DNA from: Macrostomum lignano
Taxonomy: Eukaryota
Length of the DNA: 64,000 bases
Assembly: GCA_002269645.1 (NCBI GenBank)
Contig: NIVC01000319.1
Location: 434,001 to 498,000 of the forward strand
Direction of reading: 5' to 3'
Numbering within the stretch: the stretch's first letter is position 1; every line of letters begins with the position of its first letter. The position numbers were made by a program, and so were the translations under genes. Below are positions 12,480 to 62,732 of the stretch, piece after piece. The notes under the pieces are model-generated. The model was given only the letters and a program-made list of their open reading frames with translations, did not search any database and was not told the DNA's origin.

Positions 12480-14396
12480 CCATGCGAGCCCAATTTATAT
12501 GTACATCGGCGTTGCGTACAGTACGTACAATTCATGCAATTTAAGTGCGGCGATCCTTCACCCCCACTCTGGTGACGGGATTTTATTCATCGTCTGAAAA
12601 TAAATATCGATCAGCCCAACTAGCAGGGCTCCACCTTTCGTCTCCAAGGACTCTACGGACTCCAATGACGCGGATCTGAAGGACATCTGAGGCGTCAGGC
12701 ACGAGCTGTCGGAGCACGAAGGCCTCCTATTGCGCGACAGCCAGCTGTTCGTGCCTGAGGTGCTACGGTTCCGGTGCCTTCAACTGGCTCATCAAGGCAT
12801 GCAAACTAGACCGCCTGTAATCGAAGGTCTGGTGACCGGGCATGCACTCGGCAGTGGAGACTCATGTGGCCGCCTGCATCAGCTGCGCGGCCTCCAACAG
12901 CGAGGCGACTACAAAGGCAACGCGCTTGAAGCCGACGGATCTACCGGATAGGCCATGGCTCGATCTCGACCTTGACTTCCTGGGGCCCGTCAAAGGAAAA
13001 TCGCTACTCGTCTGCACCGACCACTTTTCTCGGTTCCGCTGGTTGAAGCTATGGCAGACACAACGGCCGCCGCCACCACACGCGTGCTCCGACGGTGATG
13101 TAGCATCATACATGCGCAACCTCCAAAATTCGGTGCGACTTAGTTTTAACAAAAATGCGACGTAGTTTTTGGCCAAAAATGCGACTTACATGTAAAAGAA
13201 ACCCTAACGCAAAATTAACGCAACTTTGGGTACACGGTAGGAGTAACTATAACTGTCTTATTAAGGCAAGATGCTTCGTCATCTACTTAGTACTACTTGG
13301 GTATTTATTCGGGTGGGCATTTTTGCGACTTACCTTGGTTGGCCGCCAAATCGGTCGGCCGGATCGGCCGACTCGGCCGAATGTTGCGCATGTATGTGTA
13401 GCATTTTCGGCCAGCCGCTCAAGATGTCGACTGACAAGGTGTCGCCCTTCTCATCAGCGGATTTAACCAACTTCCAGAAAGACCAAGGAGTCCACCATCA
13501 TCGGATCACGCCGCTCTACCCGCAGGCCAACGGAGCCACCGAGCGCTGCAACGAGGGCCGCCTCAACAAAGCCATACGCGCAGCTTTCGCCGAAGGAAAA
13601 GACTGGACGGTAGCTGTCGACGAATACCTGGCCGCGCACGCCGCACAGCTCGACAGGAGTCGCCCCGGCAAACCTGCTCTTCGGACGCCAAGTCAATGAC
13701 GCGATCCCCAGTCTTCACCACTCGCGACCTGTGAAAGTGTCGCGGGCCGCCATTGCCGGAACGGATCGGAAGGCCAAAGAGAAGATGAAGGACTACCGCG
13801 ACCAGCGGGACCATCAAATCCAACCGAGCGCGTCCTACGGCGCCAGTAGCACCTTCGTTGAAACCGTACCGTGGACTGTGGCGAATTTCAGGAAAATGCC
13901 CTTGTTATTCAGCGCGGCGAGACCACTTGCCGACAGCACGCCACTCAGGTCAAGAAGCTGCCGGAGCCCCCCGGCCACGCAGCAGGCCGAGTCCATCGGT
14001 GAGACCGGCGGCCAAGAGGCGCCCGGCGAGCCCGCGGAGCCGATCGCGGCCAGGCCGCACCCACGCCAGGCCAAAGACGGGGCCAAGAACTACAAGGAGC
14101 CGGACCTCAGGAGGCATTAGGCCTCAGTGATTGCTTGGTAGCAGCAGACTTTGACAATATGTATTCTTTGTTACAATATTTTGTTTTTACCCCCTTATTA
14201 CTAATCCGCGCGTGGAGAGAGATGTTGTGTTCTCGCTAGCCCAGTCTATATGTACATCGCCCTGCGTACAGTACGTACAATGCATGCACTTTACGATTCT
14301 TCACCTGCACTCTGGTGGCGTGATTTATCCATCGTTTGAAAATAAACAAATATCGATCAGCCCAACTAGCAGCGCTCCACCTTTCGTCTCAGCACA
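12480..14396 (+). mobile_element. Deleted Ty3/Gypsy LTR retrotransposon remnant (integrase region between two diverged LTR-like repeats)
   Basis: Integrase fragments HELSEHEGLLLRDSQLFVP, CISC, PWLDLDLDFLGP and HRITPLYPQANGATER. A polypurine tract GGAGAGAGA precedes a TG...CA LTR at 14223-14396, and a similar sequence lies at about 12480-12645. Confidence 0.8.
13107..13396. mobile_element. hAT-type MITE (CATACATGCGCAAC family), copy 1, inserted in the Gypsy integrase
   Basis: TIR CATACATGCGCAAC / GTTGCGCATGTATG and perfect 8-bp TSD TGTAGCAT. Confidence 0.9.
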
Positions 14397-15779
14397 CTCC
14401 AGCCTTTCCTACTATAGCCATTACAATGGTTTTCTGGCAGAATCATTTAATTATCTCGACGGTCCGGAGGGCTGGCGACTTGATTCTTGCTCCAGAAGGT
14501 CGCGCTACAAAAAGTGAGTCCATGTTCTCGGGTTTTGTGTGCCTTCGTTGCTCTGTTCGGGCGCAGCAAAAAAAATTGTGTCTGGGGGGTTCCCCGAGGG
14601 CGAAAAAATGGATTGGAATTCCTGTTGCTAAACAGAAGGAAAATCCAATCATGAAAATATCTTCAGAAGTACATGATTTGAGACAATTGCCAATTTTGTC
14701 CCCAAGGCTGAACAATTTCCATCGTGCTAGCGCATTTTGAGACAAAACTGGAAGGAATCGAGTCCGTGAGCTCAGGACCTGAGTTGTCTGTCCGCCTGTC
14801 AGCTCGGTGGGACCTGCCATAATGCAGTAATCTAATAAGCACAATGCGGGTTCTCCATTCAGGGTCTGACAGATGACACACAGACACTGCAGCACCTCCG
14901 CTTCCTGATTGATCACCCAGCAGCGGCGGGGAGATGTGATTAAAAAAGCAGTAAAATGAGGTGCGAAATTGCAAAACTGATTCTAAAGATTCAGTAAGTA
15001 GATTAGATTAAAATAAATATTTTTAGTAAACTTTTTGTTAACTAGCGGAAACTGTTTAGCATGCAAAACAGTACCTCGTAAATAAGAATCTTTAAGTACA
15101 CCTGGGTGCGTTATAGATTCAAACAACAGGGTGGAAGGCATCCCAGATGGTTGGGAGGGGGCTAAAAGTACAGGCAGAACTCAAGCTCAACCAGGCAGAC
15201 TGTTAGAGGATTAACAGAGAGGATTTCACTTTTAGCGTCCATAGGCTTGCAGGAGGCAGCTGCGTTCGATATGAGAAATTGATACTAAAATTGATACAGA
15301 AATTGATACTAAAAAGATGGAAACAGAAATATTCAGAGTACAAAGTGAGCAAGCTTACAGCTCCAGCCACTGGCCACAGCCAGCTCACGCCACCGCAGAG
15401 AGACAGAGCAGCCTCCTGACCACCAGCCAAGGGTGACGGCAGCAGCGCATTTGACAAATGAGGCATGCTCCTGAACCAGCGTGCTTCAGGACTTACAATC
15501 AGGGATTCAGGAGCTGCTGAAGTTTGAAAATTTGCTCTGCATATCTGCGAAAAGTTTCGGCTTGCTTGATTCAGCTGCAGGGGGTTCTGGGCATCCGGAT
15601 GCAGCGAGGAGGCGTTGCCGCCCATTTCGCAAACCCCTGGACACCCAGAGGCAACTACAAGTAGAGGCAAGAGTTAAAAATTCTAAAAACATTAGAAGGA
15701 AAAATTAGCATAAATCAAAACCATCATAAAGTCTGTTTATATATAGTCAATGTGTCACCTGACCATCGGCGCTCTTCCT

Positions 15780-16200
15780 CTGTCGCCCCAGTCTCCTGTC
15801 ACCGCAGTCCCTGTCACCCAGTCCCTGTCACCCAGTCCCTGTCACCCCAGTCCCGTGTCACCCCAGTCCCTGTCAACCCAGTCCTTTTTCACCCGAGTCC
15901 CTTGTCACACCCCTGTCACTCCAGTCCCCTGTCACATCAACCCCTGTCACTCCAGTCCCCTGTCACACCCCTGTCACTCCAGTCCCCTGTCACACCCCTG
16001 TCACTCCAGTCCCCTGTCACACCCCTGTCACTCCAGTCCCCTGTCACACCCCTGTCACTCCAGTCCCCTGTCACACCCCTGTCACTCCAGTCCCCTGTCA
16101 CACCCCTGTCACTCCAGTCCCCTGTCACACCCCTGTCACTCCAGTCCCCTGTCACACCCCTGTCACACCAGTCCCTGTCACCCCAGTCCCCTGTCACCCT
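15780..16200. repeat. Minisatellite (CACTCCAGTCCCCTGTCACACCCCTGT unit), related to the 3945-4550 array
   Basis: Visible tandem array sharing the core CAGTCCCCTGTCAC. Confidence 0.9.
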
Positions 16201-19200
16201 GTTCTGTCATGAATCTTTTACACAATTTAGCTCGTACACAAGCAGTATAGCTGATTAATCACAAATGGCGACAAGTTCACACGGACGGATTCCGGAGCTC
16301 ACACAAGACTCCGACTTCGAGATTTACGCATAGAGAATGGAGCAGTATTTCATCTGCAACTAGGTTGAGTCCACCGAGGCCAAGCGTGCTACATTTCTCA
16401 CTGCCATTGGAGAGAAACACTACAAACTGCTTCGGGACATGTGCCATCCGTACTGACTAGCTGACCATCAAGACATACGAGAATCGCAGAGATGTCCTCA
16501 AGAATCACCTCCTTCCAAGATTGCTGCCAGATTCAAGTTTCAGCGCAGGATTCAGCAAGAAGGCGAATCGTCCACAGCCTTACTTAGCAGGTCTGAAGTC
16601 TGATGTGGTGCACTGCAATTTCAGCTCAATAATGAATTAATGAACGATTTCGCAATAAGTTTGAATTCAGCATGAGTAGCGATGCGATGCGCTCCAATTT
16701 TTTATAGAGTTCAAGCAGCTCCCACCAGACTCTGACCACCCTGACTAATTCATTGGAGACTTCGCAGAGAACTTCAAGCGAAATGTCGCAACCGTCGTCT
16801 ACGCACCGAGTCACAGCTCAGCTGCGACCGCACGCCCCGGCAGCAGGCAAGCCAGCTCAATGAGACCATCGGCATCACCCAAGGCTAACCGTTGCGACAG
16901 CTGCAGAGGCTCTCATTCACGACAGACCTGCAGGCATCGCAGCGCCAAGTGCCACGCCTGCGGCAGGCTCGGTCATCTCAAGAAGGTCTGCCCTTCATCC
17001 AATGCCTCCATCAAAATGGTAGACGAGTCTGACTCCTCCACAGAGGACGAACAGGAGGAGGAGCCCATCTTCCACGTATCGAACGCCTCCCGGTCGGCCA
17101 TCATGGGGCCCCTGCAGGTGGAAAAGACGCTGACACAGTTTGAGTGGATATCGGATCAGCTGCCAGCTTAGAACCAAAGTCCTTCTACGACCAGCATCTC
17201 AGCCACCTACCGCTGCGCCTATCGAGGACCACCCTGCGCACCTATACTGACCAGGCACGACCAGTGCCTTACGCCCCGCGTGACAGCGTTGACAAGGAGC
17301 TGCAGCGAATGGAAGCGGAGGGCATCATCAATCCGATCACCACCTCCGACTGGGCGGCGCCAATTGTTCCGGTCATTAAGAAGGATGGCTCGGATACTAC
17401 AAACGCACCTTCAAACACGTGGCCAAGCAGGAGCACTATCCATTGCCGAGGATCGAGGACCTGTTCGCACGGCTGGGCGGCGGCTACAAGTGGAGCAAGC
17501 TCGAACTGGCCAAGGCGTTTCTGCAGCTGCCGATCTTTGAGGATAGCAAGCAGTTTATCGTCATCAACACCCAGCGAGAACTGTTTTAAGTCAACCGCCT
17601 GTTACCTTTAGGCATCCGCTCGGCCAGCATCATCTTCCAGCGCGTGCTCGATACCCTGATGGGGCACCTTGACGGTGTTCGAGTCTACCAGGGCGACATC
17701 TTGGTGACGGCCCCACACTGGCTGCGCACAAGGCCAACCTGATGCAAGTGCTGCGCAAGCTGCAGGAGACTGGTCTGCACATCAAAGTGGCCAAGTGCGC
17801 CTTCTTCAGAGATTCGATCGACTACCTGGGTCACCGGATCGACCATCACGGTTTGCGGCCACTCACGGACAAGATCGAGGCCGTGCAGCCAGCGCCGACA
17901 CCGACCGATGTGAGTCAAGTGCGCTCCTACCCAGGCATGCTGACTCTATGCGAAGATCCTGCCCAACCTCGCATCGGTCGTAGCGCCTCTCACCAAAGGA
18001 GTGACATGGAAGTGGGGCGATCCCAGGGACCAGACCTTCAAAGCAGCTGCTGCTGGACTCTGGCGCCCTTGTGCACTTCAACCCGGAAGTGCCTCTTCGA
18101 TTGGAGTGCGACGCGTCAGCATACGGCATTGGCGTCGTGCTCAGCCACCGCGAGAAGGCTCGGACTATGCCATTGCTTTTGCCAGAAAGTCGCTGACCTC
18201 AGCCCAGCGCAATTGCTCCTAGCTGGACAAGGAGGTGCTGATCTCAAGTCGGCGTACAGCGCTTTTATCAATTCCTAAATGGTCGCCATTTCACCATCGT
18301 GACGCATCATCGGCCGCTCCTCAGACTGCCGGGCCCGGACAAGGAAATCCCGACACGCGCTGCTGTCAGAATGCAGAGGTGGGCCATCCGATTGTCAGGC
18401 TACCAGTACTCCTTGGAGTTCAGGCCGACCGAGAAGCCTGGAAACTGCATTTCCCTCTCCCGCCTGCACGTCGAGGAAGCCGCAGTGCACTCGCTCACTC
18501 TGGGGGACGATTCGAGCCCCCCATTCGACTGCTGCCGCCAGTGCCAAGGCAACTCAAGCCAACACGATACTGTCGAAGCTGCTGTGGGCCCTGCGATCGG
18601 GACAGGAACTGCCAGCTAAAAACTTCCAAAACTTTGCCCGACGTCAAACAGAGCTTTCTGTCGAAGCCGGTTGTGTACTGAGGGGGTCTTGCGTCGTCAT
18701 TCCGGACACCTGGACAGCTGTACTTGACGCATCCTGGTGCGAGCCAAATGAAGGCCCTCGCACGGAGCTTCGTCTGCTTGCCCAGACTCGACAAGGAACT
18801 GGAGCAGCTCGGAAGAGAGTGCGTCATCTGCAGAGCCCATCAGGCAGACCCAACAAGGCTCCAGTGCATCCCTGGCTGTTCCCCAAGGAACCATAAGGCA
18901 GCCTAAATTTCGATTTCGCCGGCCCTGTCAACGGTCGAATGTACGAGCGTACATCGTTATTGTCGACGCTGCTGTCGAGCGGGACGTCTGCTGGCCGGAC
19001 CATCGTGCACCTCCATGACGTATTCTCCCACCTGGGGCCTACCAAGTATTCTCATCTCAGACAACGGCCCCCAGTTCGCCTCTCGGGAGTTCGCTGACTT
19101 CATGCGTAGCAACGGCATCCGGCACGTGACTTCAGTGCCCTACCACCTGGCTGCCAACGGGCAGGCCGAGAGATTCGTGCAGATGCTCAAAGCTCACATC

Positions 19201-25150: not shown

Positions 25151-26158
25151 TCGAGCAGATTACCAGAAATACAAGAACAGGACTGTTCACGTGATCTTGA
25201 GCGCGAGTGAGCCACAGAGACCCACGATTCTCAAGGAATCGATTCTTTAAGTTGCTATGCTCATATGAGCCTATTTTGAATTATTTAAATTAAGGTCTCA
25301 TCAAGGAGTCTCCAGGCTAGCAATCCAAGTAGCTAGTGTATATTGTGGTCAAGCGGTTCGCATTAGACGAAAGAAATTGTACCACGACTACGTGGCTGTC
25401 TGGTGGTCTTCGATTTTTTGTTACCACAGACATTTCCATTTGTACTATGATGTCAAAATAAGCGACGTCATCTATTGCACCGAAATGGAGACTCACGTGA
25501 ATTTACATTGGGGACTAACACACGAGGTGTCTATGGCCCAAGATAGACAGTTGGAAGTGTAAAGAGTCGGGACTAACCTAGAGGTTTTATCGGACAATTG
25601 GATTAGCGACAATCGGACTGCATTTGCGGACCCTTAAAAATCCCTTACAAGCCTTTAATTTGGCTACAAACTTTCAGTCATACGAGCCAAAATTAGAAAT
25701 TAAAAATAAAATAATGTTTAAAACAATTAATTTTCACAATTTAATAGTAAGGTAAGCTTCCATTGAACTACAGGCAAGCACAGAATGAATTATGAAGCTG
25801 TCAGCCCATCCAATACCAAGCTAAACAGCTCCTGTCCAGTTCCACTGTACACTTGGCTGCGTACACAGGAGGAGTGAATGTACACTGCCTGTCTTCTCTT
25901 CTTATTCGTAGCCTCCGCCAGCCCTGTTCTCTCCTCTCGGTCGTCCTCAGGCCTTTCTCACCCCAGCCCACAACCCACAGCTCCGTTGCCATTGGCAACG
26001 CTATGAGGCAGGCGGCTCAGCGTACAGCAGAGAGGACAGAGGTAGGTATGGAGGCATAACTAATGAAAGAGTGTAAAGGAGAGTCGCAGGAATGCGCAGG
26101 CTTTGAATAACTAACTAGTTTGAGAAGTCTGTCAAGAAGGAGCAGATAATTGACGCAA

Positions 26159-29100
26159 ATGCTTGATCGGCATCGAATCATTGGCCTGCTGCGGCTGCTG
26201 CTGCTGCTTCTTCCGCTTCCGGCTGTGCTGGCCCAGTCGGAGACGCAGCTGCTCGACCCGCAGTACTACAACATCGCCCCGTGCCCCTGCGACCTGCAGC
26301 CCAGCACCTGCGACGTCGGCTGCTGCTGCGACACGGCCTGCACGGACAACGATAAGACCCTCTTCGACTGCGCTCAGGGCTTCTACGGCGGAAACACCAG
26401 CTCCCTCGAGCTGTACAGGAGGTGCAACTCAACTGACAGCGGTAATCCGGATTACCACCCCTTCACCTGCGTGCTGATCGAGAATTACAATGCCTACCTG
26501 GGCCGGTATTTCACGGTGCAGACCATCGCCACCGACTGGCAGGCGAAGAGGAGCAGCGGCTCCGCTGCGAGCCTGGCCGGCCAGTTTCCCGTGCAGACCA
26601 TCCTGGGACTGCAGGTGCGTGGTTCGCGCTCCGAATCTCATGAAGATGTATTAGAGATTGCTCTGAGATTGGAATGCATAGTGCACTACCGATTGTATTT
26701 TTGATATTCAAAATTTCAATTGTTTGTCTACTTTGTCTGTAAATCTCGAATGTGTCTGTATAGATCTCGAATGTGTCTGTATAGATCTCGAATGTTTCTG
26801 TATAGATCTCGAATGTTTCTGTATAGATCTCGAATGTTTCTGTATAGATCTCGAATGTGTCTGTATAGATCTCGAATATTCTGTATAGATCTCGAGTGTG
26901 TCTATAGATACTATATACGATATCAATAGACTGTCTGTAGATACCTAGCGACTGTCTGTAGATACCTAGCGACTGTCTGTAGATACCTAGCGACTGTCTG
27001 TAGATACCTAGCGACTGTCTGTAGATACCTAGCGACTGTCTGTAGATACCTAGCGACTGTCTGTAGATACCTAGCGACTGTCTGTAGATACCTAGCGACT
27101 GTCTGTAGATACCTAGCGACTGTCTGTAGATACCTAGCGACTGTCTGTAGATACCTAGCGACTGTCTGTAGATACCTAGCGACTGTCTGTAGATATAGCG
27201 ACTGTCTGTAGATACCTAGCGACTGTCTGTAGATTCATTCACCAGCACGTTCATCCGCCGCGGTTTCCAGGAATCGTCACCAGCCACTGAGCAGCGCGCC
27301 GGCCTGCTGCTGCTGGAGGTGCCGGGCGGCGTCAACCCGACCTGGTTGAACTCCGGCCAGGCCGCCAACAACCGCCTGGCCCTGCGCGCAGCGGAGCCTC
27401 GCTGGCGGCTGCGACCGCAGCGCCGGAATCGCCTACCTGCAGGACTCTTCGGACAGCTGCGACGTTACGGTGTCGGCCGCCGTCTGTCAGGGCGGCGTGG
27501 CCTCGCCAATCGATGCAAACATCTTCGCCATCGCCTGCGCTGGCGCAGCGCCTCCTGCAGCGTGTCGGTGCGCACAAACAGGTCGGCCTCCGCCCAGTCG
27601 GTGCCGGTCACCGTCACCTACCTGACTCTCAGCTCTGCCGTCGGCTATCAGAAAGGCCTGAGGGGCTCAAGTCCCACGACCTCGCCTGGCAGTCTGGCGC
27701 CGCCCAGCCAGACCGGCACCACCTGCAACAACGCCGTTCTGGACGTCCAGTACCGCTTCGTGTGGAGCGGCAGCAGCATCGTCAGCCTGACGGCCACCAT
27801 CTACATGGCGGACGTGACTGTCGACTCGACTGTGTCGCAAAAGTTTAGCGTCACTTTTGTGCACCAATCGGCAGCGTCGTTGGCAACGGTTACTAAGCGC
27901 TCGGGACTGGTAGGATACGACACGGGGGCGCCGCTGATCGGTGGAGTTCGCGGCTCCAGCGGCCCGGTGAGCCGCCGACTAACCAGCTTTGGGGTTTCTT
28001 CTGGGTAGCTGGATGAACAGGCAGCTTGCCTGGTGCAGAGAGTTGTCTCTGATCTGTGGATGATCTGTGAGCCTCAAGGTTCAGAGAGTTGTCTCTGATC
28101 TGTGAAGCGTCAGTGACCTCAAGGTTCGGAGAGTTGTCTCTGATCTGTGAAGCGTCAGTGACCTCAAGCCTCAAGGTTCAGAGAGTTGTCTTTGATCTGT
28201 GAAGCGTCAGTGACCTCAAGCCTCAAGGTTCAGAGAGTTGTCTCTGATCTGTGAAGCGTCAGTGACCTCAAGGTTCGGAGAGTTGTCTCTGATCTGTGAA
28301 GCGTCACTGACCTCAATCCTCAAGGTTCAGAGAGTTGTCTCTGATCTGTGGATAATCAGTGAGCCTCAAGGTTCAGAGAGTTGTCTCTGATCTGTGGATA
28401 ATCAGTGAGCCTCAAGGTTCGGAGAGTTGTCTCTGATCTGTGATGCGTCAGTGAGCCTCAAGGTTCGGAGAGTTGTCTCTGATCTGTGATGCGTCAGTGA
28501 GCCTCAAGGTTCGGAGAGTTGTCTCTGATCTGTGATGCGTCAGTGAGCCTCAAGGTTCGGAGAGTGTCTCTGATCTGTGATGCGTCAGTGAGCCTCAAGG
28601 TTCAGAGAGTTGTCTTTGATCTGTGAAGCGTTAGTGACCTCAAGCCTCAAGGTTCAGAGAGTTGTCTCTGATCTGTGAAGCGTCAGTGACCTCAAGGTTC
28701 AGAGAGTTGTCTCTGATCTGTGAAGCGTCAGTGACCTCAAGGTTCGGAGAGTTGTCTCTGATCTGTGAAGCGTCAGTGACCTCAAGGTTCGGAGAGTTGT
28801 CTCTGATCTGTGAAGCGTCAGTGAGCCTCAAGGTTCAGAGAGTAGTCTCTGATTTGTGAAAAGTCAGTGAATACAGTCTTCGCAGAATACAGGTTTAATA
28901 CAGCATTTTGGTTGATTCAATCTAGGAGGTTTTAGGCAGAACACGCCACAAGTAGTTTTACAGTCGGTTCACACCTGCTGAACTCCCGCAGGTGAACGCC
29001 AGCTCCAGCTATTGGCCAACCCTGTGGCGGGCGACCTCAGGCGGAGCATGTCCCGCTGCCGGAGCCACCGGCGGCGACCCGGTGCTCTTCCAGTTCGACG

Positions 29101-31436: not shown

Positions 31437-40910
<9,474 letters not shown>

Positions 40911-41565: not shown

Positions 41566-44379
41566 TCACTTGTTGTCCCCGCTCTCCGCCGCCTCGGTGG
41601 GATATTTCTCCCGGAAGTAGGCCCGGCTGGCCTCCGGGTCGGGCGCCAGGCCGGCGTCCCCCGAGTTCCAGTCGGCCGGGCAGACCTCGCCGTGCTCGTC
41701 GGTGAACCGGAAGGCCGTCAGCTGGCGGTATAGCTCGCCGACGCTGCGGGACACCTGCGGACAGGCGATGAAGGGTGCCCGAGGGTCAGGGTGCACCGAC
41801 CCGCATCCGGGATACATTTCCCATTCTTGGTTCGGCAAGTCCCCATGCAGATAAAAATACGCCAATCAAGGCGAACCACGAACTCTCACAATCGCACGAG
41901 CTGTCTGCAATTTCCTTGGGTAGCCGATCAACCTTCAAGTAGCCCCGGCCAATTTAATAGATTAATCATTTAACAACAATGAATGACTGAGGCCACTGAT
42001 GAACCGTTCGGTTTGGCAAATTAATGCAAATTTAGCGAGTCTATAGAAACAGAGAACGCTCGGGTGCCCACGCAAGATGAAGCTTGAAGCGATGAGCCAT
42101 GCAATGCACTGTGGGAGGCCCTGCAATATCAGCAAATCCGAGACAACGGCAAGCCTAATCAAGCAGAGCAGGAAGAGTTACCTAGGCTACGGGGTTGTAG
42201 CCTAGTCGTTAGAGCATTGGACTCACGATTGAAGGGTCGGGGGTTCGATTCCCAATCCCACTGGAACAATTTGTGTTCTTGCATTTAACTCTGCATTGCT
42301 TCAGTTCACCCAGCGGTAGAATGGGTGCCGGCATAAGCTGGGGTAATTGAGGATGTGTGTGGCGACCCTCTAATCTGTGGACTGAACAGCCGTACGCAGC
42401 CTTCAGATGCGCCGCGCGCTAGCTGCGGCTGAGCTGTCGGTTGCACATCTGGCCATTAGGGCAGGCGTAATTATTGATAAAAATAATTATTCCTAAATAA
42501 ATGTACTCCTTCATCTACATTCAAGAGTTGGCAATAGTTCACAAAACATATTTTTTAATTCTGCCAAAGCATTTACCAGCAAGGAGTGCAAGTCGTAAAT
42601 AACATATTTTTTCGGCAAGCGCAAAAATATATGAATCATTTTTTATTCTGCGCAGAGACGAAGTCGGGGAGATGAAAAGCACTAACGGCTCAGGTGAGCC
42701 CCGAGTGCTGATCAACAGTAAACACCGGCTTTGCAATCGAATTTCTTTGACAAGCTGCAAGGGATTAGCAGGCGGCAGTCAGGAAATAATGCAGTGATCG
42801 CCGTCAGGCATTTTCCCGAATTCAAGAGAGCTGCAGCGGCCTGAAGCTGCAACTCAAAGGCCTCTGTTTGTTTTGCTGATACTGGACAGACTGCAAAACC
42901 TTCCGGACAAAAGCTGCCATATCCGATTGCAGAAAACTATACGGGTCAACAACTGACGGATAGGCGTTCCACTTGAGCTTGGAGCAATTTATACAGAAGG
43001 CTGGGTAAACACAGGCGTTTATGGCCTTTCAAATGCCAAAGCATTGCTTCAAGACTGCGTGCAACCTTGAAAACGGAAAATAAAAAGCCCCACAAAGTCT
43101 CCTTGCGAAAGAGTGTAATCATGCCAAGAAAGTGCTGCGTTGCAGGATGCAGCCCTAATTATGTCATCAAAGAAAGGTGCATTGTCTTATGGCTTCCCGA
43201 AAGAGGCCAAATGGCCCGGCCGATGCAAGTTACGTAAATAGCCCAAGCCGACTGTCTGACCGTTTGAAAGCAGCTTCTGCTCGCCCCGTTTCTATAAAAA
43301 GCTGTCGATTTTGTTTGTCGTAACGTTTGAATGAATAAACTTGTTAACGTGACAGCATGCAGCTTCAGTTTAACTTTATTGTCAGCCTGGATGCATCAGT
43401 GATGTCTTACATGAAAGTCCAGGCCTCGAGATAAAAAATTACACAAGACGTCATGCACTCTCGTAGCTCCTCACGCCCCAAAGCACCTTTGAACTGAATC
43501 TGGGTGACAATTGGCCATCCAGTTTCTTTCTCTTCTGGAGCGCTGATTGGCTGAATGGAAACTGCCCACTGTACATGTTCGCATAAGCACCGGTTTCCTT
43601 TCTACCCTCCGCTCCACCAACTCTGAGCGTAAACGACCGTTTACCGTATTTGGGACCCTGAGCTCTGTTCTTAATCTTACGTTTTTTTCAGTTTTGCAAG
43701 CGTCCCTGCTAATTCCCAGGGCCCCTTCCCTGCATGTCCGCCTCTGCTAAGCATGGAGAGTAGCTACAACCTTCGAGTTACTGGAGCCCAAGTTCAGTGG
43801 CGCTCTTGTGCAACCATAAAAGTCTCAAACTTTCGTCCGCAAAGTCGCTCCCAAGCCCCTCACCATGGCATCGTTGATGGTGAGCTGGCGCACCACCCCC
43901 TTGTCGTCAAGAATGACGTGGGCTCGGTGCAGCAGCTCCGCCTTGGCGTTCCACACACCGGCGAAGTGGCAGCTGAACCGGCCGGCGCCATCGCAGATGA
44001 CGGGGAACGGCAGTTCCTGCAGGCCGCCGCGGCTGGCCGGCGTGTCCATCCAGCGCTGCACCTGGTCGACGCTGGCGTCCACCACGCCGACAACGTAAGT
44101 CTTGTGCTGATCGTGCAGCTCCTTGACCATGTCCGCTGAGACGGCGTGAAACTCATCGAAAAGGTCGCTGCCAGAGTCGGACAGGCGGTCGACGGCCGGG
44201 CCGTGGGTCGGCAGGAACAGCAGCAGGAGGTAGCTGTGCGACAGGCGGTAGGTGCGAAGGCTCACCTCCTGGAGACTGCCGCCGGCAACCGCGACTGCGG
44301 TGGCGTCTTCCGGGGCGACTTGGCCAACCGAGACGGGCTGGCTGGAGCTGCCGCCGGCCGGTTTGCGATAATTCGACAT
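41566..44379 (-). CDS. Typical 2-Cys peroxiredoxin homologue lacking the peroxidatic Cys (pseudo-peroxidase), 234 aa; exons 44379-43864, 41754-41566
   Basis: VGQVAPE..YLLLLFLP..VVGV..WMDTPASRGGLQELPFPVICD..LHRAHVILDDKGVVRQLTINDAM|VSRSVGELYRQLTAFRFTDEHGEVCPADW..SRAYF aligns to the AhpC/Prx1 family. Phase-0 GT-AG intron, intact ORF with GC-rich third positions. Confidence 0.9.
42191..42490 (+). mobile_element. tRNA-derived SINE, copy 2 (in the peroxiredoxin intron)
   Basis: Colinear with 9383-9692; TAGCCTAGTCG A box, GGTTCGATTCC B box, AT-rich tail. Confidence 0.85.
43121..43220 (+). pseudogene. THAP-domain remnant (P-element-like transposase N-terminus)
   Basis: MPRKCCVAGCSPNY, then after a frameshift KGALSYGFPKEAKW, matching the THAP CxxxxC...FPK...W pattern. 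Confidence 0.5.
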
Positions 44380-46359
44380 TATACGTGCTGTTGTGTAGTC
44401 ACCAGGACTTGCGAGTGTGATCTGTCAGGATATATGCACTTGTAGGTCCTGGTGGCAATTGGCACAAATCCCGAGTCTATGGCCCAAGTAAACTTACCGC
44501 TTTGAAAGTACTTTTTTACGCAGCGAAAGGCAAGCAGAGCAAAAAATGTGATCACGATGTCACGCGCGAGCCTATCTAAACAATCTATTTTTGAGTTAAA
44601 CTGACGAGCTGCACTTTCTACCGCAGCGAATCGGCACGCACAATGTTACATTTGTGCCATACCTCGACAACAGTTATTATAAATAATGTGATGGTAAAGC
44701 TGAGACAAGATGTTTTGGAAGGCTTCCACGCTATCGTGATGCAGAATATTTTTGTTAGGATCAAAGGGAAGAAGAGTGATGGAATTAATTACAGTCTCGA
44801 TTTTCAGCCTCGAAGAAGCGTAGAGCATCGGCAGGTCGGTCGGGAATGGAAATAATTGCTGCATGCAATTCAAGGCAGCAAAAGAAGATCTGTGTTAATC
44901 AAGCTGTTTGCGGGCGTGATAACCAGACCCAATTTGGCATAATTGTTCGAGGCTGTGTTGCTTTTGGTGTCAAAAAAGCATCCTGAGTATGTCTTGATGA
45001 ATGCGCATTTAGATCTCAGTGATGATAAGTGAATGAATTATTGAATCGATATTTCTTGGTTTTTTTCATTGCATGCGGAGGCATCGCCACGGGGGGGGGG
45101 CGCAGGGTCCCCCAGTAAAAGAAATGGAGGGACAAGACAATGCCTTAGACATTTAGACATTTCTTGGGTACCATTTTGAAATGCTCATAACTTTTGGCAG
45201 GTACATTGGTATTGCTGTGAAATTTATGCTTCGAATAAAAACCAGCGTGAAAGAGAATGTGGGTAAAGCTTTAACTTATTTAAACAATCCTGCTGTCCAC
45301 GGTGAACAGAGTCCGGAAACTTTTTTTTCAAATTTTAGCACGGAGTCAAAAAGGACTTGGTGTCAATCAACAACAGGATGAACACTGGCTAATGATCACG
45401 CACTTATTTCGCTTTAATTACTGCATGATCGACAGCTGAGTTAGTTGCATGCCGCATGACGCAGAATAACATCGGTACTGCGAAGACAAAAGGTCGATCT
45501 CAAACTCAAGCTCAGTAGGAGGTCAATCGATCTCAGTGAACACTCTTATAAAAGGATGCTGTGTACCGACTAGCCGACCAGCAGCTCCTTCGGGAGCGGA
45601 TGCATTTGCGGACTGGGGCAGGGATTGTACCGACCGATTCACTGCAGCTTTAATCCACTGTAGCAATCCAAGCAAGATGTGCACAAAAGGACGAAGCTAA
45701 TTTCCTGTTGGTGCAGCTTTAATTCGCTATAATAAAACATTGAGTTGTCCATTGGTGTAATAAAAGTAAGAGTATATTCGCCTCAATGGCACAGGACAAA
45801 GTCCGGGCTGCACAGCCTTACACAGGATGCACTTCTGCGCCGATAATTCTTGTTGACAGTGTCAGAGTGGGCGTTGCACACCTACGCATTAGGGGTTGGC
45901 CCTCTGCAGCAGCGGGAATCGGATAGGCCCCAAGCGATGTCTCCAAGCTTGTATCAAACGAAGAATCCTCTACGAGGAAATTACTCGTAGGAAAACGGAG
46001 CCTAAAGAATTTGTGGACAGGCAAGGCGATGATGGATAACGGGCATGCAGGAAAGTACTGAGCAAACTAAGGATTATCGCGGCATGTTAAGCTGAGTGAC
46101 ACGTTTGATATTAGGAAGCCTTCTTAATTACCCGAACCAATTTACAAGCGATCTTATCAGAACTACCCTTATTTAAACATTTAGAGTTTAATTGCAGAAT
46201 CAGATCAAGGCCGCACTGCCTTACTATAAGCAGTATGAGGCGGTCGATGTTAGTCAACGATTTTAAATCTACACTGTCTCGAAGTCGAATGGCTCATGCT
46301 TTGTAAGTACATCATATTCTCATGGCGCATTAGGGGGCATCCTTCCAGTGTCGTCATGA

Positions 46360-47155
46360 CCCGATTACGGGCGATTCTTCTGATGTTCTCGTGGCGGATT
46401 ACGGGCGATTCTTCTGATGTTCTCGTGGCGGATTACGGGCGATTCTTCTGATGTTCTCGTGGCGGATTAGGGGGGGGGTTCTTCTGATGTTCTCGTGGCG
46501 GATTAGGGTGATTCTTCTGATGTTCTCATGGCGGATTAGGGGCGATTCTTCTGATGTTCTCGTGGCGGATTAGGGGCGATTCTTCTGATGTTCTCGTGGC
46601 GGATTAGGGTGATTCTTCTGATGTTCTCATGGCGGATTAGGGGCGATTCTTCTGATGTTCTCGTGGCGGATTACGGGCGATTCTTCTGATGTTCTCATGG
46701 CGGATTAGGAGCGATTCTTCTGATGTTCTCGTGGCGGATTAGGGTGATTCTTCTGATGTGCTCATGGCGGATTAGGGGCGATTCTTCTGATGTTCTCGTG
46801 GCGGATTAGGGCGATTCTTCTGATGTTCTCATGGCGGATTAGGGGCGATTCTTTTGATGTTCTCGTGGCGGATTACGGGCGATTCTTCTGATGTTCTCAT
46901 GGCGGATTAGGAGCGATTCTTCTGATGTTCTCGTGGCGGATTAGGGTGATTCTTTTGATGTTCTCATGGCGGATTAGGGGCGATTCTTCTGATGTTCTCG
47001 TGGCGGATTAGGTGCGATTCTTCTGATGTTCTCGTGGCGGATTAGGGGCGATTCTTCTGATGTTCTCATGGCGGATTAGGGGCGATTCTTCTGATGTTCT
47101 CATGGCGGATTAGGGGCGATTCTTTTGATGTTCTCGTGGCGGATTAGGGGCGATT
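46360..47155. repeat. Minisatellite, 32-33-bp unit
   Basis: Tandem CGGATTAGGG(G)CGATTCTTCTGATGTTCTCRTGG. Confidence 0.92.
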
Positions 47156-47492
47156 TTTTGTTCTCATAACGGATTCGAGACAATCATTTGCTACTTTCAG
47201 GGTATAAAAGGGTATCCTTTCAATGTTCAAATTAAGGATTAAGGGCAGTTCTCAGCGGACTTTACTTAGGTGACTTGACTTGAAGATGAGCCAACGCAAA
47301 GGAAAATCAATGAAATCAGCAACATCAAAACACGGAGAACAGAAAAAGTATTTCCAGTGAAAGCAACAGCCAAGTGAAACATGGGGCTTCAGCCAATTAG
47401 CATTCAATTATATTGTCCTAACAATTCCAGTCCTGCAAGTTCAGGTGCGGTCTCAGTGAACGCGCACCAAAAGTTGATTGATTTGAACAAAT

Positions 47493-50400
47493 TCACTCCA
47501 GGACCTCCGCTCGCTTCTGCGCCACGCGCTCCTGGCGCCGCTTCCTGGCCTCCCTGGCGCGGGTCCGCCTGGCCTCGGCCTGGTCCATAAGCTGCTTAGT
47601 GCGAGCCCGCTCCGCCTTCTTCCTGTGGATGTGCTCAACCAGGACGCGCTTGTTCTTGAATCCGTTGCCCTTGCAGCTCATGTACAGCTGGTGGTACAGG
47701 TGCTTGTCGAGCTTCTTGGCCTCGCGGTAGCGCTTGAGCAGGCGGCGAAGGACGCGCATGCGGCGCATCCAGAGCACCTTCTCGGGCATGCGGGCGTTAG
47801 CCGTGCCCTTGCGCTTGCCCTGGCCCATGTGGCGGCCCTTGCGCCTGGCGATCAGGTTCTTGCGGCAGCGGGCGCGCGAGTGGACAGCTACCGGCTTGCG
47901 GATGATCAGGCCGTCCTTGACGAGCTTGCGGATGTTCTGCCGGCTGTTGGCATTGGCGATTTCGCTGTTCTCGTTGGGGTCCAGCCAGATCTTAGCTTTG
48001 CCGCACTTGAGAACCGCGGCGGCCAGGCGCTTCTGTAGGCGCAGGTTGCTAGGTGGTGGAGAGGGCAGGGGCGATTGGGAATGAGGATTAATATGATTGC
48101 AGCCTGAATTACAGTGGCATTTGCGATCTTGAGTACAGTGTTGAACAATAAAACAGAATACAACAATATATAAAAATAAGATATAATTTAATTTACAAAC
48201 CAGCCAGTGTTTTTGTCTATCAGCTATGCTAGCCTATAGTGCAAGACCTTCACTATAGCAAAGCACTAAATTAGATACCAAAAGTACCAAGCATAAGATA
48301 CAATAGAATAAAAAATTGCAACCATAGCTAAAACCAAAAGTACAGCAAAGCTTTTGAGTATTTTTGAAATCATATCCTATGATTTTATCCTAGCTTGGAA
48401 AGAAGTTTGAATTTATAATTTATAATATTTTGATATATTAAACCTAAACTACAAAACATGAAAATGTAATCTTTTTCAGTTACAGAGTGGCCTAAAGAGC
48501 TTTTTAAGAATCTGGGCAGTGTGGTAATTACTGTTTTAGCAGCTGTTTCTTGTTAGTTATATTATCATTATATACAGTCTATTATGCATACTAGAACAAA
48601 AATCTATATTAGGCAAATAAATGCCAGTTTATGCAAAAAACAGAACAATTCCTTAAAATACTGTATATGCAAAAATCTCTTAAAGGAAATCAGCTGACTT
48701 TTTAATGAGAACAAAACTAAATGAACTCTTGACCGGGTGATTCCCAAGGTTGCACATGTATGTGCACAAGCTTGGGAATCACCTGATTGTTTCTATTGGC
48801 AATATGCACATGTAAGTTGCAATTGGTTAAGAGTAATCATGTGACTACTAACTATTTTGTCCAATAGTAGCATGTTAATTTAGATTATATAATAAGACAC
48901 ACACAGAGTTTTGATTTTTATAGGTTGAGATTTTTGTTAGCTTTAGTAGACTGAATACTAACTGAATAAGAAATTGATTGTCAAAACTGCTTTGTGTGGC
49001 TTTTACTTTAATTGACTTGATTTGAATGTTGAATTACAAGTGCTACAATTCATATTATTGAAACAAAAAAGAGCTAGCCTAAAAGTGAACATACATGCGC
49101 AACAGTCGGCCGAGTCAGCCGATCTGGCTGACCGATTTGGCGGCCAACCAAGGAAGTCGCAAAAATGCCCACCCGAAAAAATACCAAAGTATTAGTACTA
49201 AGTAGCTGACGAGGCATTTTGACTTAATAGGACAGTTATAGTTACTCCTGCCGTTTACCCAAAGTTGCGGTAATTTTGTGTTGAGGTTTTTTACATGTAA
49301 GTTGCATTTTTGACCAAAAACTATGTCGCATTTTTGTTAAAACTAAGTCGCATGGCCAACCGAATTTTGGAGGTTGTGCATGTATGGAAGTGAATAGATT
49401 GAACTGCTAATGTAGCAAAATAGCAATGCAGATTTGAATACTAAGGGAAACTTGCTATGGGAGGAATGCTAGCTATCTGGGGTTGCTTGCTTTATATAAG
49501 GGTTGTTTGCTTTTGGGGATGCTTGTTTGGGAGAATTGCTCAAATGTCGAGACTTACTAAAATAATAACCTGAATAACTGAGATATCAAGGCTTACTAGA
49601 GAAATTGCTAAGATATAATTTACTAATAGAATTATTGAGATGTTAAGCCTTGAGAAAAAAATGTTGAGATAGCAAGGCTTAAAAGGAAATACTATGATGG
49701 CAAGGCCTAAATGGCATTGCTGAGATATCAATGCTTATAAAGGAATTGTTAAGATGTAAAGGCTTATAGAAATGGAAATGCTCATCCCTATGGTCCCATA
49801 CCAATAATTCCAATTTTATCCACACAGATCTGTCTTGATAATTTCCAACTTATCCCTACAGCAACTTATTGAAATAGCTGCCACCATTCAAGTATTTAGA
49901 CCGTGTCAATAATTCTAATTTCATTCACACAGATCCATGTCAATAATTTTCAGCTTATCCTCATGGCAGATTAGAAGAGGGAATCTTAAAATGAATCTGT
50001 AAAAAGCTGTCTATTTGTTTTCACTGTTTTACAAATCTTCCTATTCAAATAAACTACTGAATACTAAAAACTTTTTCATCATTGAAAGGGTTAATTTTAA
50101 ATATTTGCTTAGCTGTCAGATTTGCTTAGAACAACTGAACAATCCTAAGATTGAGGCAAATAAGACTTGCAAAATTCAAAATTTAATATGTAATAATAAT
50201 GATTAATAATACTAATAATAATGACAATATAGATTTAATGTTAGTATTATAAAACTAAATACAAACAACTGCACAATCTTAGCTGTGGGGATAAGCTAAA
50301 AATTATTAACATGGATCCATGTGGATAAAATTGTAATTATTGACATGGCCTATAGACCTGAATGGTGGCAGCTATTTCAATTAGCTGCTATGGGGATAAG

Positions 50401-59833: not shown

Positions 59834-62732
59834 ATGTCTGACAGCGATGACCTTGTAATCCTGAGTCCGCCAACTGCCCGGAAAGGATTTCAAGGCCACC
59901 TGCTAATCAGCCCCGAGCGGGTCAAGAAGGAGCCAGCTGTGCAGATTGGCATGGTCAGGCCCTCCCTGTCAGCAGCATCCACTAGCAATATTAATACTCA
60001 GCCAGGTCTGTCAGTTCCTCTACTGAACTCTCAGTCTGCCTCCAGGACTTTGAGCATTCCTAGTTCGCGTGTTCCCGTTACTTCCAGGTGAGGAATTTAG
60101 TTTAACTGGGGGGTCACAGCATTCCAGGCCCACGGTGGGCTCATTAGAAGTACAATAAGTACTGTGTTATCCAAAGCCAACAACCCCCACTCCACCGCAG
60201 GCACCCCGCTATCGTATCGGCAGCAGCTGCAGGCGGCCCCAGGCTCAACCCGGCTCTGCAGACCCCCGGCCCAGGACTGTATTATCGCACTGTGAATCCT
60301 CGAGAGCAGCAGCTCGACTCGCAGCCTCATCAGCAGCAGCAAGCAGCCAAGAGCTCACTAATTCAACCCGGAATGCCTGGCCCTCCAACCGCTCAGCTTC
60401 CCGGCCAGCCGGCCAGTTCCTTCGTCATCAACAGCCAGTCTGGGGCGCCTCGTGTTGACCAGACCGCCCCTGTGCTGCTGGACTCCCGCCTGATCCTGTC
60501 TCACGTGTCCCCGCTGGAGAATCACGACTCGCACCAGCTGCTCAACCAGATCAAGTATCCGCACGAGCCCTCGGCCATTATCAAATGCATCGAGTGCTGC
60601 GACCAGTTCTACTTCCGGCACTGCTACCAGCATCACAGGTTTGCTCTTTATCTGGGAGATTTGAGTATGGTGGATTGCTAAGCTAGCCAATTTCAGATAA
60701 ATTAAAATCCAATGGATTGCTAACCTAGCCAATTTCAGATGAATTATAATCCAATGGATTGCTAACCTAGCCAATTTAAGATAAATTATAATCAAATCAA
60801 TGGATTGCTAACATAGCCAATTTCAGATAAATTAAAATCCAATGGATTGCTAACCTAGCCAATTTCAGATGAATTAAAATCCAATGGATTGCTAGTCTGT
60901 CCGTCCATTTAATGCCCTTTAATCCCTTTCCCTCGTCGCCAGGGAGCGCCAGGTGGTGTCCATCACCTACAACTGCGAGATCTGCAACCGCAAGCTGGCC
61001 TTCTACAACAAGTGCGCCCTGTTCGCCCACGTCCGCACGCACAAGCTGGGCTCCGTTGACCCCAGCAAGCTGACCATCTGCAGCCTACCGCTGCCCAAGC
61101 TCAAGACCCTGAGCGAGGTCAGCCTGAAGCAGGGAGTGTCCCAGCTGGAGCAGGCGCACGCCAAGTACCAGGAGGCGTTGAAGGCTCTCAACGCCTGCCT
61201 GCCGCCGGGCAGTCAGCAGCAACAGCAGCAGCTGCTGCAGCAGGTCGGCCAGCTCGGCGCCAACTTGAACCTGACCGGCGCCGGAGCGTCCACTGCGGCC
61301 GCCTCAGCGTCCGCCACTACGGCTTCTGCCCCCACCTCCACAGCTGCCGCTACCGCCGGGCTTCCCGGGACGTCGTCAGGCAGCGCCGTGGTGCCGATCA
61401 CCATCGACCTTGAAGAGGGCAGCGGCGCCGGTGGCGGCTCCGACTCCGCTGCCAACTCTGTTGCTGGCGATGTCGCTGCGACTGTCGCCACCGACATGAG
61501 CGCAGCTTCGACTGCCTCTGGGGCGGCCGGCCAAGAGGCCAAAGACTCCCGCCCGACTGCCGTTGTGGAGCCGGCTGTTCTCCAGGTTGGCGCGGGCTGA
61601 ATGATATGGGGGAAAGCGTGGTGGCGGTTCCTCCCTCATCACTCATTCCCTACTGCTCCCCTGTCCCGCAGTCCCACCCTCATCACTTATTTCCCACTGC
61701 TCCCCTGTCCCACAGTCCCACCCTCATCACTTATTTCCCACTGCTCCCCTGTCCCACAGTCCTAACCAGATCACTCATTCCCCACTGCTCCCCTGTCCCA
61801 CAGTCCCAACCAGATCACTCATTCCCCACTGCTCCCCTGTCCCACAGTCCCACCCAGATCACTTATTCCCCACTGCTCCCCTGTCCCACAGTCCCACCCA
61901 GATCACTCATTCCCCACTGCTCCCCTGTCCCGCAGTCCCACCCAGATCACTAATTCCCCACTGCTCCCCTGTCCCGCAGTCCCACCCAGATCACTCATTC
62001 CCCACTGCTCCCCTGTCCCACAGTCCCACCCAGATCACTAATTCCCTACTGCTCCCCTGTCCCGCAGTCCCACCCAGATCACTCATTCCCCACTGCTCCC
62101 CTGTCCCGCAGTCCCACCCAGATCACTTATTCCACTGCTCCCCTGTCCCGCAGTCCCAACCAGATCACTTATTCCCCACTGCTCCCCTGTCCCACAGTCG
62201 CTGGTCGTCTTCGGCCAAGGCGACGCCGCCCCGGCCGAAGCCGCGGCCTCCTCGGCTTCAACGATTCCTCGGCCGCGCCAGCAGCAAACCTGCGGAGTCT
62301 GCGGCGGCTCATTCGACAGTCTGGCCGTCCACCTGGGCGACAGCCTGAAGGAGTGCCCGCTGTGCAAGAAATTCGTGCCCGACAGCCGCTGCGCCCTCCG
62401 AGCCCACTTCCGGCTGCACTTGTCCGCCCCGGGCCCGTGTCCGGAGTGCGGCGAGGAGGTGGCCCCGGCCACCGCCACCCAGCTGGAGCGGGAGGTGGCC
62501 ATGCGGGTTCACCTGAGGTCGCAGTGCTTGCACCTGCAGCGCTCCAAGGTGTTCATCTGCCTGAAATGCGAGTACCCGCCCAGGGCTTTCTCAGCTCTGA
62601 GGCAGCTGGCTGACCACATCATTCACAGTCACACTGAGAAGTTCTTCAAGTGTACCGTGTGCACCCTGGCCTTCAGGCACACCAACCAGCTGGCTGCCCA
62701 CCTGGAGAAGGAGCACAACTCGCAGCTAACTG
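59834..62732 (+). CDS. C2H2 zinc-finger protein of the ZNF532/592/687 family, 3' incomplete. Exons 59834-60087, 60201-60638, 60943-61585, 62198-62732
   Basis: IKCIECCDQF..|RERQVVSITYNCEICNRKLAFYNKCALFAHVRTH resembles the family signature VTCNHC..LVFYNKCSLLSHAR. Further fingers CPLCKKFVPDSRCALRAHFRLH and CTVCTLAFRHTNQLAAHLEKEH. Phases are consistent; the donor at 62733 has no downstream exon in the window. Confidence 0.85.
60680..60895. repeat. Short tandem repeat, about 42-bp unit, in a ZNF intron
   Basis: ATCCAATGGATTGCTAACCTAGCCAATTTCAGATRAATTA repeated about 5 times. Confidence 0.85.
61625..62197. repeat. Minisatellite, about 44-bp unit containing a 3' splice-site sequence
   Basis: Tandem CCCACTGCTCCCCTGTCCC(A/G)CAGTCCCACCCAGATCACT(C/T/A)ATTC; the last unit supplies the acceptor at 62197. 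Confidence 0.9.

Follow-up and report, generated by a model that had tools for sequence, protein, structure and literature searches.

Peroxiredoxins (Prx) are credited with peroxidase-independent roles as chaperones, signalling relays and scaffolds. Unless engineered mutants are used, these roles are difficult to disentangle from catalysis. A gene of the flatworm Macrostomum lignano raises the question of whether a Prx that lacks its peroxidatic cysteine is a copy in decay or a protein kept for a purpose other than catalysis, and if the latter, for which one. The gene (locus BOX15_Mlig020987) was analysed within a 64,000-nucleotide stretch of contig NIVC01000319.1 (assembly GCA_002269645.1, forward-strand positions 434,001 to 498,000), hereafter termed the window, where it occupies the minus strand as a two-exon coding sequence (CDS) at 41566-44379, from stop codon to ATG, with a product of 234 amino acids. 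An earlier note, made from the sequence alone, had singled it out as an intact, spliced open reading frame (ORF) with no Cys in the active-site segment, and our analysis confirmed the missing Cys as well as the exact extent of the CDS. The evidence presented below speaks against decay: the gene does not look like a decaying pseudogene and appears to be under constraint. Its product is very probably a functional, maintained protein other than a peroxidase, and a role as a dead subunit that pairs with canonical Prx1 is put forward as a tentative proposal.

A Prx1-type homologue without the catalytic cysteine

By descent and fold, the M. lignano protein is a homologue of the Prx1/AhpC type (typical 2-Cys Prx). 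Profile alignment and structure prediction, both recommended in the earlier note, led to this assignment: Pfam recognised AhpC-TSA (PF00578, 38.1 bits at a cut-off of 26) and 1-cysPrx_C (PF10417, 38.8 bits at a cut-off of 21.1), and the closest solved structures were those of PRDX1 and PRDX2 (E ~1e-28). The AlphaFold model used here was built on a 40-sequence alignment and adopts the Prx fold with a predicted local distance difference test score (pLDDT) of 85.3 and a predicted template modelling score (pTM) of 0.83, while prediction without an alignment gave a pLDDT of 36. Values below 50 were limited to residues 1-3 and 61-69, the latter corresponding to the former loop of the peroxidatic Cys (Cp loop). 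Foldseek returned human PRDX2 (7kiz) as the top match (E=1e-20, template modelling (TM) score 0.87), followed by PRDX3, PRDX4, TSA1/2 and tryparedoxin peroxidases, with TM scores of 0.87-0.91 to PRDX2, PRDX4 and TSA2 (all TM scores target-normalised).

As read from its sequence, the protein is nevertheless without the defining catalytic feature of a peroxiredoxin enzyme. The active-site segment FLPTHGPAVDRLSDSGSDLFDEF (23 residues) aligns nearly one to one with its 24-residue counterpart, and the HMMER and MAFFT alignments agree in placing Asp64 in the column of the peroxidatic Cys and Pro61 in the Thr column, the segment reading P57-THG-P61-AV-D64. The P-x3-T/S-x2-C motif at the start of helix alpha2 is thus absent, with Asp at the Cys and Pro at the Thr position, and the losses extend through the pocket (C64D, T61P, P65R, E67S, F60G/F62A). 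Of the two ways of counting offered in the earlier note, the one that put Asp at the Cys position is the one recovered by the alignments, and the alternative that put Leu there found no support in them. About 12 extra residues, which the same note had located inside the active-site segment, do exist, but the insertion MVKELHDQHKTY (residues 84-95) sits outside that segment, between helix alpha2 and strand beta4.

Compared with PRDX1 and PRDX2 (7kiz, 1qmv, 4xcs), the flatworm protein shares the fold (TM 0.87), the two Pfam domains, the active-site Arg, the GGL motif, the resolving Cys in GEVCP-W, the YF helix and a nearly identical beta7 dimer strand. It differs in Asp64 and Pro61, in changes at 10 of the 13 conserved loop-helix positions, in the 12-residue insertion after alpha2, in GGLQ instead of GGLG, in two new cysteines and in an overall identity of ~33%. 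The motifs that had been reported as retained were all recovered in the alignments, namely the Arg of LHRA as Arg152, GGLQ at 118-121 (three of the four GGLG positions kept), Cys197 in GEVCPADW and YF at 218-219, GGLG and YF being the motifs of the 'sensitive' enzymes of eukaryotes; in the 40-sequence alignment, the columns of Cys197-Pro198 and Trp201 are invariant. The new cysteines, C129 and C137, are lineage-specific. Because the peroxidatic Cys, on which peroxide turnover by any Prx depends, is missing, thioredoxin-dependent peroxidase activity is predicted to be absent, and the view that the protein cannot be a conventional peroxidase is supported. The automatic UniProt name of A0A1I8I8E1 and A0A1I8GLU2, 'thioredoxin-dependent peroxiredoxin' (EC 1.11.1.24), is accordingly probably a functional mis-annotation.

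Several candidate explanations for the unusual sequence were considered and rejected. An exon restoring FTFVCP was discarded, as no FTFVCP-like hidden or alternative exon was found within 38-50 kb of the window; selenocysteine recoding was discarded, as the ORF contains no in-frame TGA; and an unspliced mini-intron at residues 84-95 was discarded, as this part resembles an exon in its GC content, belongs to the transcript-based models and is a predicted helix. An assembly error was ruled out because three further loci of GCA_002269645.1, as well as the UniProt entries A0A1I8I8E1 and A0A1I8GLU2, have an identical active-site segment.

The gene is probably maintained

To describe where conservation has been lost, we defined 50 conserved columns, i.e. 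positions that are at least 80% conserved among active Prx1-type matches. The protein keeps 32 of these 50, with 3/13 kept in residues 55-70 as against 29/37 elsewhere (Fisher p=0.00066). This clustering of losses in the catalytic loop argues against decay, which would be uniform. The GC content at third codon positions (GC3) of the CDS is 0.877, compared with a GC content of 0.478 in the intron, and the neighbouring cyclase gene has a GC3 of 0.836. In a substitution-only neutral simulation, a stop codon was gained in 95% of ORFs when 70% identity was kept and in 99.8% when 50% was kept; the identity of the flatworm protein to any active Prx is only ~33%.

M. lignano is a recent polyploid, and the ORF and both splice sites are intact in three paralogous loci (L001-L003), in which the splice sites of the intron are the same. 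The differences between these loci comprise G9S, G10S, N233K, one in-frame N-terminal Ser codon and two synonymous changes (V29, L180). Residues 11-232 thus carry no non-synonymous and two synonymous changes across the three loci, with the three replacements and the Ser indel all located in the tails. Exon mismatches between loci lay below the expectation derived from the introns (1.2-1.8%; Poisson p=0.008 and 0.014), a test that draws on few events. Altogether, three or four intact genomic copies exist and the gene is present in the annotation derived from RNA-seq. The earlier statement that GC-rich codons mark a gene that does not look like a decaying one is supported by the GC3 value, the clustered losses and the absence of replacements in residues 11-232. 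An essential catalytic residue has been lost with the fold retained, which is one hallmark of a pseudoenzyme.

A tentative role as a dead subunit

In the Prx1 family, strand beta7 forms the B-type dimer interface, and the C-terminal arm of one subunit covers the peroxidatic Cys of its partner, which is attacked by the resolving Cys. The Cp loop also helps to hold the decamer (A-type, dimer-dimer) interface. Identities of the flatworm protein to human PRDX1 are 0.67, 0.52 and 0.45 for beta7, alpha5 and the resolving arm (together residues 159-222), compared with medians of 0.50, 0.67 and 0.52 for active Prx; for residues 15-158, identities range between 0.23 and 0.38, compared with 0.43-0.71 in active Prx. 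An arm that acts in trans and is kept at enzyme-like conservation leads us to infer that a dead subunit may pair with canonical Prx1. The protein would then be a selectively maintained, catalytically dead Prx1 paralogue that associates via the B-type interface with canonical M. lignano Prx1, giving a heterodimer with one live site, built from the peroxidatic Cys of the partner together with Cys197 and the YF arm, and one dead site. As the Cp loop supports the A-type interface and is rewritten here, incorporation of such a subunit would be expected to shift the dimer/decamer balance of the active enzyme, its sensitivity to hyperoxidation or its behaviour as a relay.

A canonical prdx1 transcript has been assayed in M. 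lignano by quantitative PCR with primers encoding RGLFII and FQFTDK (PMC5043416), which do not match the gene described here beyond homology. According to a 2026 study, B-type heterodimers and mixed decamers are assembled from Prx1-type isoforms in yeast, human, plants and Leishmania, with some isoforms stabilising decamers and others breaking them (PMC13038412). Among the functions listed in the earlier note, a modulator of active Prx acting through hetero-oligomers fits the conservation pattern and this literature best. Taken as a whole, mechanism included, we nonetheless regard the proposal as tentative, and it may well prove wrong.

A number of points weigh against it. Very few substitutions underlie the paralogue comparison, in which copies that have been homogenised could be mistaken for constrained ones. 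The higher similarity of the C-terminal part could stem from generic constraint on the structure, or from gene conversion in the distant past, instead of a role in trans. No orthologue was detected outside M. lignano in the libraries searched, and no expression or orthology entry for Mlig020987 or 'peroxiredoxin' was found in the papers on M. lignano that were searched. We also considered whether a canonical paralogue had recently converted the 3' part of the gene; this is unlikely, since identities to the C-terminal third do not exceed ~55% for any protein in the collection.

Alternative explanations

Some probability, albeit a low one, attaches to a constitutive holdase or scaffold, in which Asp64 would mimic the sulfinate, form a salt bridge with Arg152 and lock a homo-oligomer of decameric or larger size with ATP-independent chaperone activity. 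Cys-to-Asp changes are used experimentally as mimics of hyperoxidation, and the earlier note had raised the possibility of a natural mimic. The Asp in the peroxidatic-Cys column, the retained Arg152, the overall fold and the YF helix are in line with this suggestion, but its pocket is not: with T61P, P65R, E67S and F60G/F62A the rest of the pocket is lost, and the AlphaFold model contains no confident helix at 61-69, which gives no indication of a sulfinate-like pocket in a locked, fully folded state. In addition, the rewritten Cp loop is the one that supports the decamer interface, and a holdase would leave the enzyme-like conservation of the resolving-Cys arm unexplained.

We give a similarly low probability to a new function apart from Prx partners, such as binding of a ligand, haem or client, or a thiol switch formed by Cys129, Cys137 and Cys197. 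The lineage-specific C129 and C137, the equally lineage-specific 12-residue helical insertion and the strong divergence of the N-terminal two-thirds in a kept ORF would suit such a change of function. No positive pointer to a specific ligand emerged, however, and the dimer strand and the trans-acting arm are the best-conserved parts of the protein.

Less probable still is a functionless relic, i.e. a Prx copy that was disabled only a short time ago, continues to be transcribed and has yet to pick up disabling mutations. The failure to find an orthologue outside M. lignano and the low power of the paralogue tests leave room for such a copy, but the divergence is deep (~33% identity) for a gene with a GC3 of 0.88 in which both the ORF and the splice sites have been preserved, and neutral drift over that distance nearly always produced stop codons in the simulation. 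The clustering of losses in the catalytic loop and the lack of any replacement in the fold across three loci likewise speak against a relic.

The protein could also be thought of as a dedicated redox or haem partner of a soluble guanylate cyclase that is encoded downstream and co-transcribed with it as a spliced-leader operon, which we consider very improbable. The cyclase gene, with HNOB, HNOBA and Guanylate_cyc domains, lies on the same strand, and its ATG follows ~650 bp past the stop codon of the Prx-like gene, a spacing below the 1-kb operon criterion for M. lignano (PMC8629364). UniProt model A0A1I8GK59 fuses both genes, using a GT donor that overlaps the Prx-like stop codon (AA|GTGATG) and an acceptor at ~40948 just upstream of the cyclase ATG, and a Cys-Pro motif is retained at Cys197. 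Adjacency in a eukaryotic genome is weak evidence, though, and the fused model may be an artefact of prediction; the two genes may represent either a spliced-leader operon pair or such an artefact. Finally, that the protein is still a peroxidase in which C129, C137 or C197 serves as the peroxidatic residue can be dismissed as barely credible despite the three remaining cysteines and Arg152, since the thiolate-activating P-x3-T-x2-C pocket is destroyed and these cysteines all lie outside it.

Distribution of Prx1-type proteins without a peroxidatic cysteine

Orthologues with the same Cys loss, for which the earlier note had called, did not turn up beyond M. lignano: the only close cluster among 5.8 billion in a word-indexed search was that of M. 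lignano, and an exhaustive search of 1.84 billion representatives gave one cluster below 1e-30, the next best match scoring 97 bits. Overall, the best non-self match of the protein reached 97-99 bits. Among the weaker matches, three further Prx1-type proteins without a peroxidatic Cys but with a VCP motif were detected, namely KAK8838833.1 of Tritrichomonas musculus (P0081), a fusion of Prx with an Mpv17/PMP22 domain (P0032) and a protein with a Cys-to-Ser change (P0031; see Table 1). The metagenome contig that encodes P0032 is gene-dense, apparently intron-poor and eukaryotic. Like the flatworm protein, all three have lost the peroxidatic Cys and kept the VCP motif and the C-terminal arm; unlike it, they carry Asn or Ser at the Cys position and lack the 12-residue insertion, and they are 26-37% identical to it. 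They look like independent losses in distant lineages, so that loss of the peroxidatic Cys may be a recurrent event. When the open literature was searched by phrase for natural peroxiredoxins without a peroxidatic Cys, only engineered mutants came up.

A broader idea, which we consider doubtful, is that resolving-arm-only subunits are recurrent, selected regulators of Prx1 in the flatworm, in Tritrichomonas and in an alga-like eukaryote, acting as dead partners in asymmetric heterodimers. If this were true, such subunits would provide a Cys and a YF arm with no peroxidatic site and thereby govern the stability of decamers, the sensitivity to hyperoxidation or the output of the relay; in the same scheme, the M. 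lignano protein might also be co-transcribed with the soluble guanylate cyclase.

Related systems and significance

The closest parallels to the proposed role are the hetero-oligomerising pairs Tsa1-Tsa2, PRDX1-PRDX2, BAS1A-BAS1B of Arabidopsis and Prx1-Prx2 of Leishmania (PMC13038412), in which a second isoform coexists, as it does in the flatworm. The flatworm protein, which carries no evident targeting signal, has retained the dimer strand and the resolving arm, as have these pairs, and its putative role in tuning decamers through mixed assemblies would match what was published for them. In the published pairs both isoforms are active, whereas the putative flatworm partner would be naturally dead and in this respect would resemble the engineered Cys-mutant tools of that study. 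Engineered Cys-to-Ser or Cys-to-Asp mutants such as rat PrxI C52S (2z9s), which is among the best matches, also carry a non-thiol residue at the peroxidatic position; the change in the flatworm differs from theirs in being natural, and it comes together with an insertion and with a pocket whose other features are lost as well.

A maintained, naturally dead Prx1-type subunit would be a ready-made separation-of-function case and, if the proposal is true, would put the recently reported mixed assembly of Prx1-type isoforms to a natural test (PMC13038412). Stable transgenesis, which is established in M. lignano, makes this species a suitable one for testing a dead Prx subunit (PMC5730564). At a more practical level, surveys of Prx isoforms by Pfam domain will count dead copies as enzymes.

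Gene model, deposited records and genomic context

The coordinates of the gene and its features are collected in Table 1. The locus agrees with contig NIVC01000319.1 of GCA_002269645.1 without a mismatch across 5.8 kb; exon 1 is identical to the exon of L003 and is matched by tblastn with PRDX1. The 234-residue product is identical to UniProt A0A1I8GLU2, and NCBI PAA85546.1 (BOX15_Mlig020987g3) is the same protein apart from a translated 5' untranslated region (UTR), which is carried by two of the deposited models. The deposited gene models of M. lignano derive from a transcript assembly based on RNA-seq (StringTie/TACO/TransDecoder; PMC5730564). A confirmation by cDNA, as proposed in the earlier note, was hence obtained in part: these transcript-derived models include the CDS, but an exact look-up of the 234-residue product found no spliced, cDNA-like Logan contig on record.

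Table 1. Coordinates of the Prx-like gene, its features and neighbouring elements in the window (residue numbers refer to the 234-residue product), and of three Prx1-type proteins from elsewhere that lack the peroxidatic Cys.
Feature	Position	Strand	Remarks
Exon 1	43864..44379	-	codons 1-172; ATG 44379-44377; ORF and GT donor located
Single intron	41755..43863	-	2109 nt, GTGAGG...CCGCAG (GT-AG), GC 0.478
Exon 2	41566..41754	-	codons 173-234 and TGA stop; Pfam 1-cysPrx_C on residues 186-218
5' UTR, at least 30 nt	44380..44409	-	read as SPGDYTTARI in '5-prime partial' deposited models
Candidate poly(A) signal AATAAA	41345..41350	-	~215 nt past the stop; sequence match only
Degenerate active-site loop-helix F55-F77 (FLPTHGPAVDRLSDSGSDLFDEF)	44149..44217	-	no Cys; pLDDT <50 at 61-69
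Asp64 codon GAC	44188..44190	-	peroxidatic-Cys column in HMMER and MAFFT alignments
12-residue insertion M84-Y95 (MVKELHDQHKTY)	44095..44130	-	lineage-specific, predicted helical
Arg152 codon, retained active-site Arg	43924..43926	-	column at least 90% conserved
Strand beta7 region D159-D170 (DKGVVRQLTIND)	43870..43905	-	B-type dimer-interface strand, 67% identical to human PRDX1
Resolving-Cys motif GEVCPADW	41668..41691	-	Cys197 at 41682-41680
YF motif Y218-F219, C-terminal helix	41614..41619	-	alignments
Soluble guanylate cyclase gene	40955-33400	-	HNOB, HNOBA, Guanylate_cyc
tRNA-like element	42191-42260	+	antisense within the intron; Rfam 33.7 bits (threshold 29), no ARAGORN call
Short intronic ORF	43067-43237	+	contains PRKCCVAGCSPNY; no Pfam match at E<=0.01
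Ribosomal protein L19 coding region	47472-48044	-	191 amino acids in one block, 72% identical to human RPL19
KAK8838833.1 (P0081), Tritrichomonas musculus			no peroxidatic Cys; VCP resolving motif and C-terminal arm kept
P0032, Prx-Mpv17/PMP22 fusion	L004 6001-7326, ENA metagenome contig k141_2150739		Arg also lost
P0031			Cys-to-Ser protein; VCP motif kept

Exon 1 is overlapped by two antisense ORFs on the plus strand (43753-44139 and 44146-44445), which gave no Pfam match and are taken as by-products of the high GC content. Within the intron, the tRNA-like element is probably a tRNA-derived repeat or pseudo-tRNA, and the short ORF, similar to the beginning of a THAP-type zinc finger, might be what is left of a transposon. 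With regard to the paralogous loci, L001 (9957-10000) and L002 (10031-10073) contain ~45 nt extra in the 5' UTR directly before the ATG, corresponding to ~44380 in the window. The additional in-frame Ser codon belongs to L002 (MSSNYRK), and the NCBI model for this locus, PAA68523.1, does not reflect the L002 differences.

Upstream of the Prx-like gene, at a distance of ~3.1 kb and on the same strand, lies the coding region of ribosomal protein L19, and this order is common to the three paralogous loci. Other sites with recognisable content in the window are 5009-6427 (minus), 13271-18278 (plus), 26150-28008 (plus) and 60953-61600 (plus), which hold an exon of the ASC/DEG-ENaC type (amiloride-sensitive sodium channel), weak integrase and reverse-transcriptase fragments of a retroelement, a gene of the tectonic family (DUF1619) and a ZNF592-like C2H2 zinc finger. 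Micro- and minisatellites are found throughout the window, e.g. at 59-1179, 8217-9065, 9941-11664, 32580-33380, 34868-36021, 37150-38995 and 46363-47155, with (TGTC)n, (AGAT)n and (ACAGACAG)n units inside the cyclase introns and a C-rich 20-nt unit repeated ~88 times. These satellite arrays account for the extreme GC-skew bins and for many of the long ORFs listed by the program.

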